Below are positions 15,928 to 43,131 of a DNA stretch of 64,000 nucleotides, one piece after another. Under the pieces are notes generated by a model that worked only from the letters and a program-made list of their open reading frames with translations, ran no database searches and was not told where the DNA came from. Source of the stretch: Paramoeba atlantica (taxonomy: Eukaryota > Protista > Discosea); contig CDRNVI010000069.1 of assembly GCA_977017575.1 (NCBI GenBank), positions 1-64,000 of the forward strand, written 5' to 3'. The stretch's first letter is position 1, and the number at the start of each line of letters is the position of its first letter. Both the position numbers and the translations under genes were made by a program.

Positions 15928-16019
15928 CCCGGGCAGCGCGGGGGAGGGGGGAGGGGGGAGGGTGTCGGAGGAGAGGGCGCGCAGGGCGTGGGAGAGGAGG
16001 GAGGGGGAGGGCGGAGAAT

Positions 16020-17000
16020 ACGAAGAAGAAGAAAAAGAACCCCCTGCTCCCCTTATTCCTCCATGGTGTTTCGCGGTGTTGGGGGAAGAGGGAGAAAGGA
16101 TAGAGGGAGAAGAAAAAAAAGAAAAGGATCCTCTTGTTCTCCTTGTTCCTCTACCTCTATGTTGTTTCGCGGTGTTGGAGGAAGAGGGAGAAAGGGTAGA
16201 GGGAGAAGAAAAAAAAGAAAAAGATCCTCTTGTTCTCCTTGTTCCTCTACCTCTATGTTGTTTTGTGGTGTTGGGGGAAGAGGGAGAAAGGGTAGAGGGA
16301 GAAGAAAAAAAGGAAAAAGATCCTCTTGTTCTCCTTATTCCTCTACCTCTATGTTGTTTCGCGGTGTTGGAGGAAGAGGGAGAAAGGGTAGAGGGAGAAG
16401 AAAAAAAAGAAAAGGATCCTCTTGTTCTCCTTGTTCCTCTACTTCTATGTTGTTTCGTGGTGTTGGGGGAAGAGGGAGAAAGGGTAGAGGGAGAAGAAAG
16501 AAAAGAAAAAGATCCTCTTGTTCTCCTTATTCCTCTACCTCTATGTTGTTTCGTGGTGTTGGGGGAAGAGGGAGAAAGGGTAGAGGGAGAAGAAAAAAAA
16601 GAAAAGGATCCTCTTGTTCTCCTTGTTCCTCTACCTCTATGTTGTTTTGTGGTGTTGGAGGAAGAGGAAGAAAGGGTAGAGGGAGAAGAAAGAAAAGAAA
16701 AAGATCCTCTTGTTCTCCTTATTCCTCTACCTCTATGTTGTTTCGTGGTGCTGGAGGAATAGGGAGAAAGGGTAGAGGAAGGAGAAAAAGGAGAGGAAAA
16801 GGGAGAAGAAGAGGAGTAGTCGGTTGTTTTCCCTTTTCCTCTACCTCTATGTTGTTTCGTGGTGTTGAGGGAAGGGGTAGAAACGGTAGAGGAAGGAGAA
16901 AAAGGAGAGGAAAAAGGGGAAGAAGGAGAAGAAGGGGAGTAGTGTGTCGTTGTGCTTTTTTCTCTATGTTGTTGTTTCGTCGTGTTGGAGGAAGAGGAAG
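16020..17000. repeat. 96-bp minisatellite, 7 near-perfect plus several degenerate copies
   Basis: GAAAA(A/G)GATCCTCTTG recurs at 16121, 16217, 16313, 16409, 16505, 16601 and 16697. Confidence 0.95.
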
Positions 17001-26524: not shown

Positions 26525-28253
26525 ATAATTTGCGGTTCTTCTATTCTCTCGATGGTTCTTGTTACAAATCACTTTCTGCGCCACTGGAGAGTGCTTTCGC
26601 ATCCATTTAAGACATTGATTCTCACTCCTGGAGAACTTGTTTCTAATGATACTTCTTGAACGACACGAGAATCTTAACGCATCCAGTGCGCGTCATTAAA
26701 AGGTGTGAAGGTTGATAAGGAAGTATAAACGAATTCAAAAAACACACCGTTTATATAAAATTAATGTACAAAAACAAAATTCATCATAAAAAAGGGGCGG
26801 AAAAATGTTCAAGTAAACTTTTTTTTACCAGAAATGAGAAAAGTGCGAATATTGGTTCAGTTTCACCCGGTTAACGGTTAAAATTTCGTCGATTTTAACC
26901 TTAAATCGGTTAACCGTAATTAGGGAGTAACCGTAATTAAGAAATTCCGTAAATAGGGAAAATCGGTTATGCGTTGCCCACAACGAATTTAAACATCAAT
27001 GAAACGATAACTATCAACCATCAATATCGTGCATCTTATACCCACTAGATTCGAAAGTGCGCTGTCGCTTTCTTCTAGTGGTATCCGCATCATCGTTGCG
27101 TTCCCCGTAGTCAAATCCAAGCTAGAATGTTTCCAAGCCCCTCGTAATGCAATTATCTGATACTGTGTAGCAACGTGGTGGCGCATTCCACACGAGGAAT
27201 GCCAGTCGCTCTATTCCTCGCCCAGGAGACTTTCTGCTTCCTGATATTCCAGTCACAGGGCGCATAAAAATATTTTGCTCGGAAAATAAAAATGTCAGTT
27301 TTAATCTTAAATAGATTAACCGTAATTAGGTAAAAACCGTAATTAAGGACAACCGTAATTAAGTAACGCCCGGTAATTAAAGCTGCCTTAATTAAAGTTG
27401 CCTTAATTTTAATTACCCTTAATTGGAGTTTCTACGGTATATCATGTTTTAATTGAATTAGTCTTCCATGCAATTCTTTATGCAAAAGAAATTTCTACAC
27501 GAGCTTAACTTAGAACACGAATTTTCGTGTATTCAAAGGCCTTGCATTTCAGCGTTTCCGGTAGTAAATCGACATGAACTTCTCCCGTAAGCTCGGAGTT
27601 GCCACGAAGTTTGTTTTTTCATGCACTTATAGTGCAGAGATTTGCCTCACTACATGTCCTTACCCGCATACGACGGGTGGATCAAGTGAGGGTTCGCCCT
27701 CGCCGGAGGTGTGCGGGTGCAGAGAGCTGGGGCCCCAGGTGCAGAGAGCTCGGTTGTCATGTGCAGGTGCAGAGAGCCAGATGCGTAATCCCCATATTAC
27801 AGTTTCGGGGGCAATCCGGGTGCAGAGAGCTGCGACAGAGCCGAGTGCAGAGAGCGACCCCCAGGTGCAGAGAGCCGGGAGTCTCGTCGGCGGAGGACAC
27901 GCCTAGTGGCCCTCAAGGGAGGCCACCGTAACGCATGGCCTCTTCGGAAAGGTAACTGCGAGAGAAGGGGAAGCCGAGAGAGGGAAACACACTCACTCCA
28001 GGGGAGTGATTCGGGAAGGGGTGGAAGCACGTCCCCTTCTTCAACAATGGAGGGGGTGGAGACAGTACCTGTAGGTCGCTGTCGAACGGTGACGACCAAT
28101 GGCGACCGGTGGCGAACGCTGTAGGTATTTTTTGAGGTTCGAAGGATCGACCATTAACCATACAAGTCTTCATAAACCACCCTTCATCAATAAGGAACCC
28201 CACCTTATTTTTGGCACAACAACGAAGGCCCCACACAAGCCGCGCTCGTCGAT

Positions 28254-28490
28254 TTATGCAACAAGCTCCGGCGTTAGGGTTTCCACGTCTTGCGCTTTAT
28301 GGCATTCGGGGAAGAGGTTTTTCCCCATTCGGACGCAAGTCGCGGAACAGTGAACGCAACGTTCCACAAAGTACCCTTCTTCGCCGGAGGGCTGGCGGCA
28401 ATCGAGGCAGACGGATGGCGTTTTCGGAGTGAACAGCTTATCTTCCCCACAAGTATCACAAAATTTCTTAGCACAGCGAGAAGTTTGCAT
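28254..28490 (-). CDS. Small Cys-rich (zinc-ribbon-like) ORF carried inside family B copy 1
   Basis: 78 aa from ATG 28490, with CDTC, CLDC, CVHCSATC and PECH; lies between 34-bp direct repeats. Confidence 0.4.
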   Translation of the reverse strand: MQTSRCAKKFCDTCGEDKLFTPKTPSVCLDCRQPSGEEGYFVERCVHCSATCVRMGKNLFPECHKAQDVETLTPELVA

Positions 28491-28808
28491 TAATGGAACT
28501 AACAAAAATAGTTGGGAATGTATAAATTGGTGGTGTATAAAATGCTAAATTGTTTTTGCTGATGTATAATTATATTGATCAGTCGGTCATAAAGTTGAGC
28601 ATTTTGGCCTTCAAAGTGTCGTTTTCTGGAAGTCGGTGACGATCGGTGACGACCGGTGGCGAACGCTGTAGGTATTTTTTGAGACCGTCGAAGGGCCACT
28701 TGCACTCCCTCCAATAGAGAGGGACAGTTTCGGCCTTAGTGCCGGCCGAAAACGGGCATAAAAATATAGTAAGAGTATGTCCGTTGCCGGGGAAAGAAAG
28801 GATAAACT

Positions 28809-28837
28809 CAACAAGGTACATAAACTGTATCTTTATC
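28809..28837 (-). other. Spliced-leader (SL) exon-like 29-mer at the 5' end of family B copy 1
   Basis: GATAAAGATACAGTTTATGTACCTTGTTG; one mismatch to the copy at 43101..43129. Confidence 0.7.
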
Positions 28838-37329: not shown

Positions 37330-38328
37330 ATGGTAAAATCCAAGTACCGTCCCCCAAAGGGGGGGATGACCCCTATAGGTAAGACATTATTGCGCCTGAG
37401 GTTCGAGGACGGTGTCCCAAAGAAGCAACTTGCACGAGAATTTAATATTTCTGTAAAATATGTGAGGCAATATCTGAAAGCAAAAGAAACCAATAAAACC
37501 AAAATATTTACACCGAAAAAAAATATCTTACGTCGCAGAAAAAAAATAGTAACCATTATTTCACCAAAAGACCTTGCTGGAGTGCCGAAACACAGCAGCG
37601 CTAGATGCATTGCGGGGAGATTGAGTAAAAAGGGGGTACATGTCACAAAACGCACTGTTCAACGTGACTTAAAAGCAATGAAATATACTTATTCCCCACG
37701 CCCGGTTACTATGGCGTTGACCGAACGTCAGAAGGCTAAAAGGGTTGAGTTTGCCTTAGCATGGAATGGGGATTCACGCATAATTGTATTTTCTGATGAA
37801 AAAATCTTTGATACTAATGATATGCGTAAAAAAATGTGGGTTGCCCCGGGCGAAAAGGCTACTCCAAGGCAGAAAATGCGTTGGGCCCCAAAATGCCATG
37901 TGTGGGGTGCCATTGGAGTTGGGTGGCGTTATCTAGCTATTCTTCCCAATGACAGCTCAATTACGAGCGAAACGTATATTAAAACCCTGCGTAAGACTCC
38001 TTTCCCCCGTAATTTTATTTTTCAACAAGATGGAGCAGGCGCACACACTGCAAAAATGACAAAGTCTTATCTTTTTGAATCAGAAATTCAGTATATCAAA
38101 AATTGGCCTGCCAACTCACCTGACCTCAATCCTATAGAAAATGTATGGGAAATGATACAGCAACGAGTATGTGGAATGAACCCCTCGAGTACTACTTCGC
38201 TTATTAGGTGTGTAAAAAAAGCATTTAAAGAAATCCCCCGAAGGGAAATAAATAAAACTGTTTTAAGCTTCGATCGTCGACTAGAAGCCTGCGTAAAGTG
38301 CAAGGGAGAAAAAGTGAAAAAGTGGTAA
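37330..38328 (+). CDS. Tc1/IS630 transposase, DD35E
   Basis: 332 aa. N-terminal HTH, IVFSDEKIF, VWGAIG, FQQDGAGAH, WPANSPDLNPIENVW; 35 residues between the second D and the E. Confidence 0.93.
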   Translation: MVKSKYRPPKGGMTPIGKTLLRLRFEDGVPKKQLAREFNISVKYVRQYLKAKETNKTKIFTPKKNILRRRKKIVTIISPKDLAGVPKHSSARCIAGRLSKKGVHVTKRTVQRDLKAMKYTYSPRPVTMALTERQKAKRVEFALAWNGDSRIIVFSDEKIFDTNDMRKKMWVAPGEKATPRQKMRWAPKCHVWGAIGVGWRYLAILPNDSSITSETYIKTLRKTPFPRNFIFQQDGAGAHTAKMTKSYLFESEIQYIKNWPANSPDLNPIENVWEMIQQRVCGMNPSSTTSLIRCVKKAFKEIPRREINKTVLSFDRRLEACVKCKGEKVKKW

Positions 38329-41327: not shown

Positions 41328-43131
41328 TTTGTTCGTTCATGCACTTATAGTGCAGAGATTATGCTCACAAAGTCCGTGCCCGCATACGACGGGTGGATCA
41401 AGTGAGGGTTCGCCCTCGCCGGAGGTGTGCGGGTGCAGAGAGCTGGGGTCCCAGGTGCAGAGAGCTCGGTTGTCATGTGCAGGTGCAGAGAGCCGGATGC
41501 GTAATCCCCATATTACAGTTTCGGGGGCAATCCGGGTGCAGAGAGCTGCGACAGAGCCGAGGTGCAGAGAGCTGGGCGACCCCCAGATGCGGAGAGCCGG
41601 GAGTCTCGTCGGCGGAGGACACGCCTAGTGGTCCTCAAGGGAGGCCACCGTAACGCATGGCCTCTTCGGAAAGGTAACTGCGAGAGAAGGGGAAGCCGAG
41701 AGAGGGAAACACACTCACTCCAGGGGAGTGATTCTGGAAGGGGTGAAGGGGTGGAAGCGCGTCCACTGCTTCAACAATAGAGAGGGACAGTTTCGGCCTT
41801 AGTGCCGGCCGGCAACGGGCATGAAAATACAGTAAGAGTATGCCCTTTGCCGGGGAAAGAAAGGATGAACTAAGGAAAATTTTGATGTTCATGCGCTCGT
41901 TGGCGCAGAGATACAGCCCTTGATGCGACAGCCGATATCATCGGCACAATCCGTATTGACGGATGTCGCACCAAGGGGGTTTAGCTCGGACTCTGTCGGT
42001 AGAGGGGGTCCAGGCAACTCGCCCTCTCTTTACGCAGCCGGAGGGGCGCACTGCAACCGACTCGGTCCCAGAGGTTATGATCATACGCTCGTGGCGCAGA
42101 GATACGTCTCTCTGTGTGACGGCCGATACCATCGGCGCATGACCCGCATACGACGGGTGTCACACAGAGAGTGGAGTGCGAGGTAGGAGACGAGACGCCC
42201 ATCGGTCATGCTACAGCACGTATAGCCATGGTTCATGCTGCAACACGGTCAAGCCGTGGGTTCATGCTGTCAGATGGTCTATCGTGGATCATGATGCATC
42301 ATGGGGAGGTCCGTTACCGCCGCACTCGCTACAGCATGTAGGGAGAGAGGGGTGCAAGTTCGCATCCCCTATACACGCATACAACGTGTCCTCCCGCTGT
42401 AGCACGCCCAGTGGTCCTCAAGGGAGGCCACCATGGCGCATAGCTCCCGGGAGAAGAAAGCACGAGAAGGAGAGAGCCGGGGAGGGAAGAAAGCTCACTC
42501 GAAGAGAGCGAGCCGGGGAGGGGTGAAGAGTGCGAAGTGCGTCCCCTAGTTTTATCATGCACTTATAGTGCAGAGATTTACTCACCATGTCCTTATCCCG
42601 CATACGACGGGTGGATCATGTGAGGTTTCGTCCTCGCCGGAGGTGTGCGGGTGCGGAGAGCTGGCGTCCCAGGTGCAGAGAGCTCGGTTGTCATGTGCAG
42701 GTGCAGAGAGCCGGATGCGTAATCCCCATATTACAGTTTCGGGGGCAATCCGGGTGCAGAGAGCTGCGACAGAGCCGAGGTGCGGAGAGCTGGGCGACCG
42801 CCAGGTGCAGAGAGCCGAGCCTCGTCGGCGGAGGACACGTCTAGTGGTCCTCAAGGGAGGCCACCGTGACGCATGGCCCTCTCGGAGAGGAAAAAGACAA
42901 GTCGAAAAAAAGCCGAGAGGGGGAAGCACACTCACTCCAGGGGAGTGAGTCGGGGAGGGGTGAAGTGGTGAAAGCGCGTCCCCTGCTTCAGCGACAAGAG
43001 GGACAGTTCCGACCTTAGTGCCGGCCGGCAACGGGCATAAAAATACAGTAAGAGTATGCCCGTTGCCGGGGAAAGAAAGGATTAACTAAGGAAAAAGTAC
43101 CAACAAGGTACAGAAACTGTATCTTTATCAA
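41328..43131 (-). mobile_element. Composite: family B copy 2 (41328..~41880), diverged relative (~41880..42548) and copy 3 (42549..43131)
   Basis: Two near-identical ~560-580 bp bodies in tandem; the middle module shares GTGGTCCTCAAGGGAGGCCACC and an analogous 3' hairpin plus A-rich end. Confidence 0.85.
43101..43129 (-). other. SL exon-like 29-mer followed by GT at the 5' end of family B copy 3
   Basis: GATAAAGATACAGTTTCTGTACCTTGTTG|GTAC matches the conserved kinetoplastid SL core ACAGTTTCTGTAC-N4-TTG|GT at exact spacing. Confidence 0.75.

Follow-up and report, generated by a model that had tools for sequence, protein, structure and literature searches.

The window analysed here, 64,000 nt of Paramoeba atlantica contig CDRNVI010000069.1 (assembly GCA_977017575.1, positions 1 to 64,000), contains on its minus strand several copies of a dispersed repeat, family B, and the 5′ end of one copy, at 43101–43129, is identical to part of the spliced leader (SL) of the host. 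The explanation we consider probable is that B and its relatives B2–B5 are young, structured retroposons of ~575 nt that resemble short interspersed elements (SINEs), are copied by long interspersed elements (LINEs) bearing a restriction-like endonuclease (RLE), and carry an SL head that is inherited as DNA and forms one strand of a 5′ RNA domain. The elements have the anatomy of retroposons and share a 3′ module with RLE-bearing LINEs; they show a preference for leucine-rich repeat (LRR) genes and a soft 5′ boundary within the SL, and the SL genes themselves are intact. The assembly examined comprises 45.7 Mb in 248 contigs, the window being contig C69. Sequence was read letter by letter in the window and in 90 loci of 3 kb, and genome-wide statements are otherwise drawn from counts and short patterns.

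The 29-mer and the spliced-leader genes

The minus strand of the window at 43129–43101 reads GATAAAGATACAGTTTCTGTACCTTGTTG and continues with GTAC, a T/C-rich run and TAG. The original prediction, made from the letters of the window, had taken this 29-mer for nt 11–39 of a 39-nt leader. The SL genes of the organism give an exon of 38 nt and an exact match of 29 out of 29 bases at nt 10–38, confirming the identification with slightly different numbering. The expected number of chance matches to the 29-mer was zero in 100 shuffles. It recurs in the window with one mismatch (C>A) at 28809–28837(−). The match of copy 3 to the SL gene runs on for 3 nt (GTA) into the intron and then ends, and a contig loose end at 43098 is independent evidence for the same SL/B boundary. 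The GT, pyrimidine tract and AG reported for copy 3 are present, and copy 1 lacks 13 nt at this position. The B elements of the window and their parts are as follows.

42550–43129, minus strand: B copy 3, a non-coding, full-length element of 580 nt that shares 99% identity with many genomic copies; first in a head-to-tail chain in an LRR gene
43101–43129, minus strand: SL-derived head of copy 3, found by exact pattern match; identical to SL exon nt 10–38 (29/29)
43097–43100, minus strand: GTAC directly after the SL part of copy 3; GTA is shared with the SL intron start, and with the last SL base it gives GGUAC, predicted to pair with SL GUACC (helix Pb)
42993–43010, minus strand: internal anti-SL strand (GGAACTGT-CCC-TCTTGTC), complementary to SL nt 19–26 and nt 10/13–17; predicted to close the 5′ domain as a panhandle
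42550–42575, minus strand: 3′ module of copy 3, CTCTGCAC-TATAA-GTGCATGA plus tail TAAAA; same architecture as LINE 3′ ends
42073–42549, minus strand: subfamily B3 copy, 5′-truncated, tail TCATAACC; adjoins the copy 3 tail
41880–42072, minus strand: subfamily B2 copy, 5′-truncated, tail ACATCAAAA
41328–41879, minus strand: B copy 2, 5′-truncated just after GTAC and without SL head; 3′ end intact, followed by the remainder of the LRR gene
27610–28837, minus strand: B copy 1, in a second LRR gene; head of SL nt 9/10–38 with one mismatch, 13 nt absent after the SL, and a nested insertion of ~655 nt

The SL gene sequence, AACTTTAACGATAAAGATACAGTTTCTGTACCTTGTTG/GTATGAGAAGC (the slash marking the exon end), was found in 34 copies with conserved upstream sequence and an intron start of GTATGAG. 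These genes lie in the tandem arrays whose location had been asked for, in units of 1.45–2.9 kb, some of which also contain a 5S rRNA gene. All 34 promoter-bearing genes are uninterrupted through the exon and 120 nt beyond. Across the genome the 23-nt SL core occurs 891 times, and SL followed by GTA is present at 234 sites, ~40 of them SL genes or SL RNA pseudogenes and the remainder B-type heads reading GTAC. Another ~650 SL copies begin at SL nt 2–4, often preceded by an A-run, and lead into a short pyrimidine-rich leader and a long open reading frame (ORF), one such ORF containing a reverse transcriptase (RT) domain; these are LINE-type elements copied from trans-spliced mRNAs, in a genome with more than 1,800 RT candidates. 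The setting is kinetoplastid in style, the genes of the window being long, intronless (RPB1, Nop56-like, LRR proteins) and nearly all on the same strand.

Anatomy, age and targets of the B superfamily

At least five related subfamilies (B and B2–B5) were distinguished, each element being ~575 nt long and without an ORF. A first look gave 578 candidates, 40 scored copies were 90–99% identical, and SL-plus-GTAC heads number ~190 genome-wide. Because ~30 copies of the window's subfamily are 97–99% identical, this subfamily is, judging from sequence identity, young and recently active. The 3′ end consists of an upstream GTCGTATGCG motif and, further on, ATCTCT, a hairpin, ATGA and a fixed tail of 8–9 nt that is specific to the subfamily (TAAAACAA or ACGAACAA in B, ACATCAAAA in B2, TCATAACC in B3 and TAAACAAA in B4); in one locus, L046, the tail is duplicated. 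The three B copies of the window end, as had been described, in a palindrome, TGCAC-TATAA-GTGCA, followed by TGA and a short A-rich tail. The B elements have no poly(A) tail, these fixed words standing in its place.

Truncation is always from the SL end, with copies starting at query positions 30, 44, 57, 125, 150 and 157, and the tail is always kept. In 17 complete copies no flank word was shared above control (longest mean 4.5 nt against 3.9 nt in the control), that is, no target-site duplication (TSD) was detected, which is compatible with RLE-type integration, as this often leaves none. Set against the usual features of a LINE-dependent retroposon, or SINE in the broad sense, the family is short, non-coding, dispersed and 5′-truncated and has a LINE-like 3′ end; the TSD is missing. 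A classical SINE transcribed by RNA polymerase III (Pol III) was considered and rejected: the head is SL exon, no Rfam family (ribozymes, known RNAs) was found in B at E ≤ 1, and the first 90 nt include T5 runs, making Pol III transcription of this 5′ domain unlikely.

Eight of 25 sampled insertions lie in LRR genes, in sense orientation within coding sequence and just after an LPxxLxxL motif, while antisense-frame LPxxLxxL motifs were met at one of the 25. Other insertions are in (GT)n, which is also the target of a neighbouring LINE, and at further sites. In the window, four elements stand head to tail (43129–41328, minus strand) between the two halves of a single LRR repeat, and similar chains occur on C31 and C56. 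We infer that repeated hits at one site without loss of sequence would fit a sequence-specific RLE enzyme that reads the upstream half-site. In at least five places a LINE is closely followed by a B-type element; the possibility that the LINE of L051 and the adjacent B5 form a composite element was rejected, their junction being unique in the genome.

A 3′ module shared with RLE-bearing LINEs

The ATCTCT-hairpin-ATGA-tail module that ends all B subfamilies also lies downstream of RT/RLE ORFs in L008, L051, L052 and L057, and the GTCGTATGCG motif is common to two of the four RLE LINE families as well. The C-terminal ORF parts of the four families contain a CCHC knuckle and an RHD...PD...E...K restriction-like endonuclease; a PDB sequence search with the L051 RLE C-terminus gave no match. 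The LINE of L008 ends in AATCTCTGCAG-TTAAA-CTGCATGA-ATATCAAAA and that of L057 in AATCTCTACAG-TATAA-CTGTATGA-ATCCTTCC, the L008 tail ATATCAAAA being nearly that of B2, ACATCAAAA. The terminal stem shows a compensatory change between subfamilies (GCAC/GUGC to GCGC/GCGC), and in B3 it holds a G-U pair that is possible only on the SL-sense strand.

These similarities support the view, put forward in the original prediction, that B is a non-autonomous retroelement carrying SL sequence: it has a genuine SL 5′ end, the 3′ module of an RLE LINE and a preference for LRR genes, and appears to use RLE LINE machinery. In the mechanism we propose, B–B5 would be copied by target-primed reverse transcription with the machinery of RLE-type LINEs (RT, CCHC knuckle, PD-(D/E)XK endonuclease), and the LINE 3′ module that they carry would comprise GTCGTATGCG, ATCTCT, a covarying hairpin, ATGA and the fixed 8–9-nt tail.

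The retained leader strand and the predicted 5′ RNA domain

Folding of the first 140–150 nt of every subfamily predicted the same closed domain (z = −6.8 for the 140-nt domain). In helix Pb, SL GUACC (nt 28–32) pairs with the GGUAC that follows it, around a UUGUU loop. Folding of the genuine SL RNA gives the same hairpin, GUACC/GGUAU, as the top of stem-loop I, where it holds the splice donor; the GU after the B head is likewise predicted to lie inside the hairpin. Helix Pa joins SL ACAGUUUC (nt 19–26) to GRRACUGU ~110 nt downstream, and helix P0 joins SL nt 13–17, sometimes from nt 10, to the adjacent UCUUUGUC. Within the domain, a long hairpin, Pd, and another helix are predicted, the latter formed by CCUUAG/CUAAGG in B and by GCUAGCC/GGCUAGC in B3/B4. 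The T/C-rich run and TAG after GTAC, which might be taken for a splice acceptor, are more simply one strand of this helix (CCTTAG/CTAAGG in B, GCTAGCC/GGCTAGC in B3/B4). The predicted topology is, by eye, a plain nested four-helix junction with no double pseudoknot, and a hepatitis delta virus (HDV)-like arrangement was therefore rejected.

Across the alignment, 91.5% of cells are paired, against 35–43% with slid partners. The values for Pa, Pb and Pd are 96–98% (97% for Pb) and that for P0 is 73%. B5 pairs with the SL in a slightly shifted register (GGAAAC-UC-AUCUUU), which is, in the model, a different solution for the same invariant SL strand. The sequence similarity of B to the SL RNA gene past the exon is limited to GTA; stem-loop I has its counterpart in the GUACC/GGUAC hairpin and in the pairing of ACAGUUUC, a likeness that could reflect either descent or convergence imposed by pairing.

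The original prediction had raised the question of whether the 5′ ends of B copies stack at SL nt 11. They do not stack; they form a soft pile-up. In a tally of 25 heads with flanks, one started at nt 8, three at nt 10, eight at nt 11 (the mode), two at nt 12, five at nt 13 and six at nt 14–18, and the first few bases of the heads are often altered. When the whole genome was searched by pattern, a few B-type heads proved to reach nt 7–9 and two or three at least nt 4. Because starts are spread over nt 8–18, with rare copies extending to nt 4, the boundary is a soft one and the ancestral head would have been longer. The predicted pairing within B RNA involves the SL part that B has retained, and this would explain both the conservation of the head across subfamilies and the position of its 5′ edge.

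In the proposed mechanism, the 5′ end would be DNA-encoded SL from about nt 10–13 to nt 38 followed by GUAC, and this SL part would not be the remnant of a target site. Pairing of SL nt 28–32 with GGUAC would recreate the top of SL RNA stem-loop I, and pairing of nt 19–26 and nt 10/13–17 with the anti-SL segment ~110 nt downstream would close the panhandle. The pile-up near nt 11 would then mark the outer edge of the panhandle, SL bases beyond it being unconstrained and lost. The RNA 5′ end may be made by trimming or processing at the panhandle base, and the fold may function as a module that defines the 5′ end or binds protein.

Inheritance of the head or re-splicing in each cycle

The head is invariant among subfamilies whose bodies differ by 12–25%. 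On one view, B elements are reverse-transcribed from an RNA to which ordinary trans-splicing attaches the SL anew in each cycle, as happens with this genome's LINEs; the head would be short through 5′ truncation only. The ~650 SL copies that head LINE-type ORFs from nt 2–4 demonstrate that the process is common here, the head equals the current SL in all subfamilies, and rare B-type heads extend to nt 4. In one copy, C37:314229, a 16-nt relic, TTTCTGTACCTTGTTG, stands between the SL and GTAC. Such a relic is the mark left by trans-splicing at the AG within the head, and it shows that B RNA can be trans-spliced and then retroposed.

Re-splicing in every cycle demands source copies with an AG acceptor before GTAC. 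All subfamilies were searched for with one degenerate pattern, in which any base but T precedes GGTAC and the subfamily 5′ sequence; it gave seven matches against three in the reversed control, and among them there was no AG-before-GTAC candidate for B, B2 or B5 and at most one doubtful candidate for B3/B4. The junction in daughter copies is TTG/GTAC, which rules out renewed splicing there. LINE heads begin at nt 2–4, whereas B heads pile up at nt 10–13 with noisy first bases, which suggests that the B template RNA itself ends at nt 10–13. Entry of B transcripts into splicing is rare, at 1 in ~190. We consider re-splicing in every cycle unlikely; given that no AG/GTAC source copies exist, the head has probably been inherited as DNA and not re-added by trans-splicing. 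The original prediction had also offered a retrocopy of a trans-spliced RNA as an alternative: this is possible for the founding event and, without such sources, unlikely as the ongoing mechanism.

Several points weigh against the reading of an inherited, structured head on a LINE-dependent element. The relic-bearing copy at C37:314229 is one. Copies bearing an acceptor could lie in unassembled sequence, and the tally of heads with flanks covers 25 copies only. The 5′ end of the B RNA is deduced only: runs X1–X3 behave as DNA contigs, and X5, guessed to be RNA, gives a single contig at 42067–42207. The outer three P0 pairs are often unpaired, and covariation support is weak, with 24–26 of 500 shuffles reaching the observed values, because the SL strand never varies. 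Finally, the pairing of LINE and SINE rests on 3′-end similarity, and the LINEs were read in part, none of them whole.

The boundary near nt 11 and elements that target SL genes

The insertion site of CZAR, SLACS and CRE elements lies between nt 11 and nt 12 of the mini-exon (PMC5814959, PMC12278014). The B system resembles this CRE clade (CRE1/2, SLACS, CZAR) in its RLE-type non-LTR (long terminal repeat) machinery, its kinetoplastid-type setting, its association with the SL and the numerical coincidence at nt 11 (PMC5814959, PMC12278014), and the original prediction had linked the two. The head would then be the downstream half of such a target: an RLE element specific for SL genes would have cut at about nt 11, gained nt 11–41 by target duplication or read-through, and later escaped to other sites. 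The modal head start at nt 11, the RLE of the partner LINEs and the extension of the SL gene match by 3 nt into the intron all agree with this scenario. CRE elements, however, lie within SL genes and have poly(A) tails and TSDs, whereas B and the LINEs here lie outside SL genes and B has the SL as its own 5′ end, with neither a poly(A) tail nor an SL-derived TSD.

The 34 intact SL genes show no trace of such insertion. The sole LINE insertion seen in an SL array is an APE-type element that lies in the spacer, ~335 nt past the SL exon and in the sense direction; its own SL remnant consists of nt 31–38 only (CCTTGTTG). Starts scattered over nt 8–18, with some copies reaching nt 4–9, do not agree with a fixed cut at nt 11, and the targets of B (LRR codons, (GT)n) are unlike the SL. 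A CRE-type parasite of SL genes is thus a tempting but wrong reading, not supported here, and we hold it to be quite improbable. What stands of the original suggestion, mobilisation by an SL-targeting RLE element with escape into LRR genes, is the RLE partner and the LRR sites; the targeting of SL genes falls away.

DNA transposon and permuted-gene readings

Helitron-type ends had been named among the findings that would speak against a retroelement, and Helitron termini were not seen on either strand of B, whose end is common to RT/RLE LINEs instead. B might be read on the opposite strand as a non-autonomous Helitron-like or other DNA transposon, with the palindromic SL core (ACAGTTTCTGT) captured as a 3′ terminator hairpin. 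The lack of TSDs, the defined ends with a hairpin near each, the head-to-tail arrays and the 29 Helitron Rep matches in the genome would suit this. The hairpin-ATGA-tail end, however, also closes the 3′ UTRs of RT/RLE ORFs, in the sense direction; truncation always removes the SL end and keeps the other; the bases at the SL end vary, unlike those of a rolling-circle terminator; neither strand has TC/CTRR termini, and there is no A|T target; and the G-U pair of B3 suits the SL-sense strand only. This reading is very improbable.

The other alternative raised at the outset, that B arose by circular permutation from part of the SL gene unit, is refuted by the sequence of that unit: three junctions in the window read AAACT, like SL nt 1–4, and a B-like segment does occur in the unit, but that segment is an antisense, 5′-truncated B4-like insertion beside a (GA)n tract, the 2,557-bp unit otherwise matches B only at SL nt 10–38 plus GTA, and the AACT junction is not present in other copies. 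The AACT(A) at the 3′ junctions had been equated with SL nt 1–5; elsewhere unrelated flank follows the tail, and in the window the CT belongs to the following LRR codon.

As an observation apart, the Helitron Rep matches include several inside open frames of 2,000–2,975 aa, so that Helitrons coexist in this genome with a very large retroelement load.

Origin and comparison with known systems

Stringent LINE/SINE pairs, such as eel UnaL2 and UnaSINE1, share a 3′ stem-loop, and known SINE heads derive from tRNA, 7SL, 5S and U1, that is, from Pol III genes and rarely from snRNAs. B resembles these SINEs in its composite build, with a 5′ head from a small RNA, a body of its own and a 3′ stem-loop of LINE origin, of the kind recognised by the partner RT. 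It differs in that its head would come from an RNA polymerase II (Pol II) product, SL RNA or the SL exon, and not from a Pol III gene.

Two founding events are possible. In the first, a trans-spliced RNA would have been retrocopied, as commonly happens in this genome. The second is a chimera with SL RNA itself, which is favoured by GTA and the stem-loop-I-like hairpin. We suggest tentatively, and regard as rather doubtful, that B is the first SINE class founded on SL RNA, its 5′ domain descending from stem-loop I (exon nt 10–38 and the intron strand) with a hairpin domain inserted into it, and its SL/anti-SL module being functional. If so, the module would define the RNA 5′ end or recruit the protein of the partner LINE, which normally meets the SL on its own trans-spliced mRNA, and each copy would have a potential SL-like splice donor and a 16–17-nt anti-SL able to pair with the host SL.

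The short non-coding trypanosomatid elements NARTc and RIME, which depend on the LINEs L1Tc and ingi, are similar to B in their kinetoplastid-type host, their dependence on a LINE and their conserved structured 5′ module, which probably defines the RNA 5′ end in Pol II read-through (PMC3383444, PMC8190864). NARTc/RIME and L1Tc/ingi share the Pr77 5′ module (PMC3383444, PMC8190864), whereas B shares a 3′ and not a 5′ module with its LINEs, and its 5′ module comes from the host SL rather than from Pr77 or an HDV-like ribozyme. The partner LINEs of B are RLE-type and not APE-type, and B is without poly(A) and TSD. Dinoflagellate SL-tagged retrogenes and partial leaders associated with flatworm transposable elements (TEs) likewise place DNA copies of the SL at the 5′ end of retroposed sequence, with relic leaders arising by re-splicing as in one B copy (PMC6050394, PMC5585692, PMC12582326). 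There the leader is a passive tag carried by retrocopies of mRNAs or TEs. The leader fragment of B, by contrast, belongs to the conserved structure of a non-coding family that is proliferating, and it is apparently inherited.

A host SL folded on an internal anti-leader as a conserved 5′ module would be a new way to build a SINE, and B could show how non-autonomous elements gain a defined 5′ end under polycistronic Pol II transcription and trans-splicing. By repeatedly splitting LRR genes at one repeat register, B is a live source of variation in a large family of surface/receptor-like genes. Each copy also plants an SL-like donor and anti-SL sequence in transcription units, making effects on trans-splicing testable.

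Other leader copies and neighbouring features

Unspliced SL RNA has occasionally been retroposed. The example at L044:1437–1539(−) (G000:C6:27087) is a retropseudogene that extends from SL nt 3 across the intron as far as the RNA 3′ end and is followed by an A-run, and further SL+GTAT copies with non-promoter flanks are on C44, C83 and C87. The 2,557-bp SL repeat unit (L086:1440–3023, C107) contains a 5S rRNA gene on the opposite strand at L086:1008–1126(−), the (GA)n tract and ~10 tandem copies of a 20-mer, TATGACAGATAAGGGTGCAG; its antisense B4-like element, at L086:1895–2213, is present in every SL unit sampled. Two array units of 7.3 kb on G000:C74 (L072:1880–2500 and L073) are lengthened by the APE-type LINE in the spacer. 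At L070:1501–1560 (G000:C41:280825), an SL gene promoter and the complete SL exon are continued directly not by the SL intron but by the 5′ leader and ORF of a LINE from an SL-headed family, which apparently puts this LINE copy under the promoter of an SL RNA gene.

A 5,093-bp tandem repeat at L001–L004 (G000:C1:9752–25052) has a lone SL copy with the same ~30-nt sequence, TCTTATTTGTATTTCGCACGAATAAAAGT, on both sides. An inverted SL-SL junction (GGTACAGAAACTGTATC then TTTAACGATAAAGATACAG...) stands at the head of an RT-bearing ORF at L028:1470–1525 and looks like the product of snap-back priming on the palindromic SL core. In several SL-headed LINE families (L005, L006, L017 and others) the short 5′ leader has TCTTTAT just after the SL; this is complementary to SL nt 11–17, the bases paired by the anti-SL strand in B, and could alternatively be a mere pyrimidine-rich leader. 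A coding element in (GT)n at L023:1490–3023 (G000:C2:374593) starts at SL nt 13 and continues with a T15 run and GTAC, and its ORF contains four cysteine-rich repeats of the form CKHxCx5CxHxCCKRH. This element may represent the 5′ end of a LINE specific for (GT)n, with its head truncated as in B.

Within the window, the ~655-nt insertion nested in B copy 1 (28053–28710, minus strand) has inverted ends of the GGAGGG...CCCTCC type, an internal direct repeat of ~45 nt and a 78-aa cysteine-rich ORF. An ORF at 37330–38328 (plus strand, opposite to the surrounding genes) contains Tc1/mariner-type DDE_3 and HTH_Tnp_Tc3_2 domains and encodes a DNA transposase. At 15964–16908, about nine tandem copies of a 96-bp unit (94–97% identical) lie within a 998-aa ORF that also contains a C2H2 zinc finger; GC skew is strong in this region.

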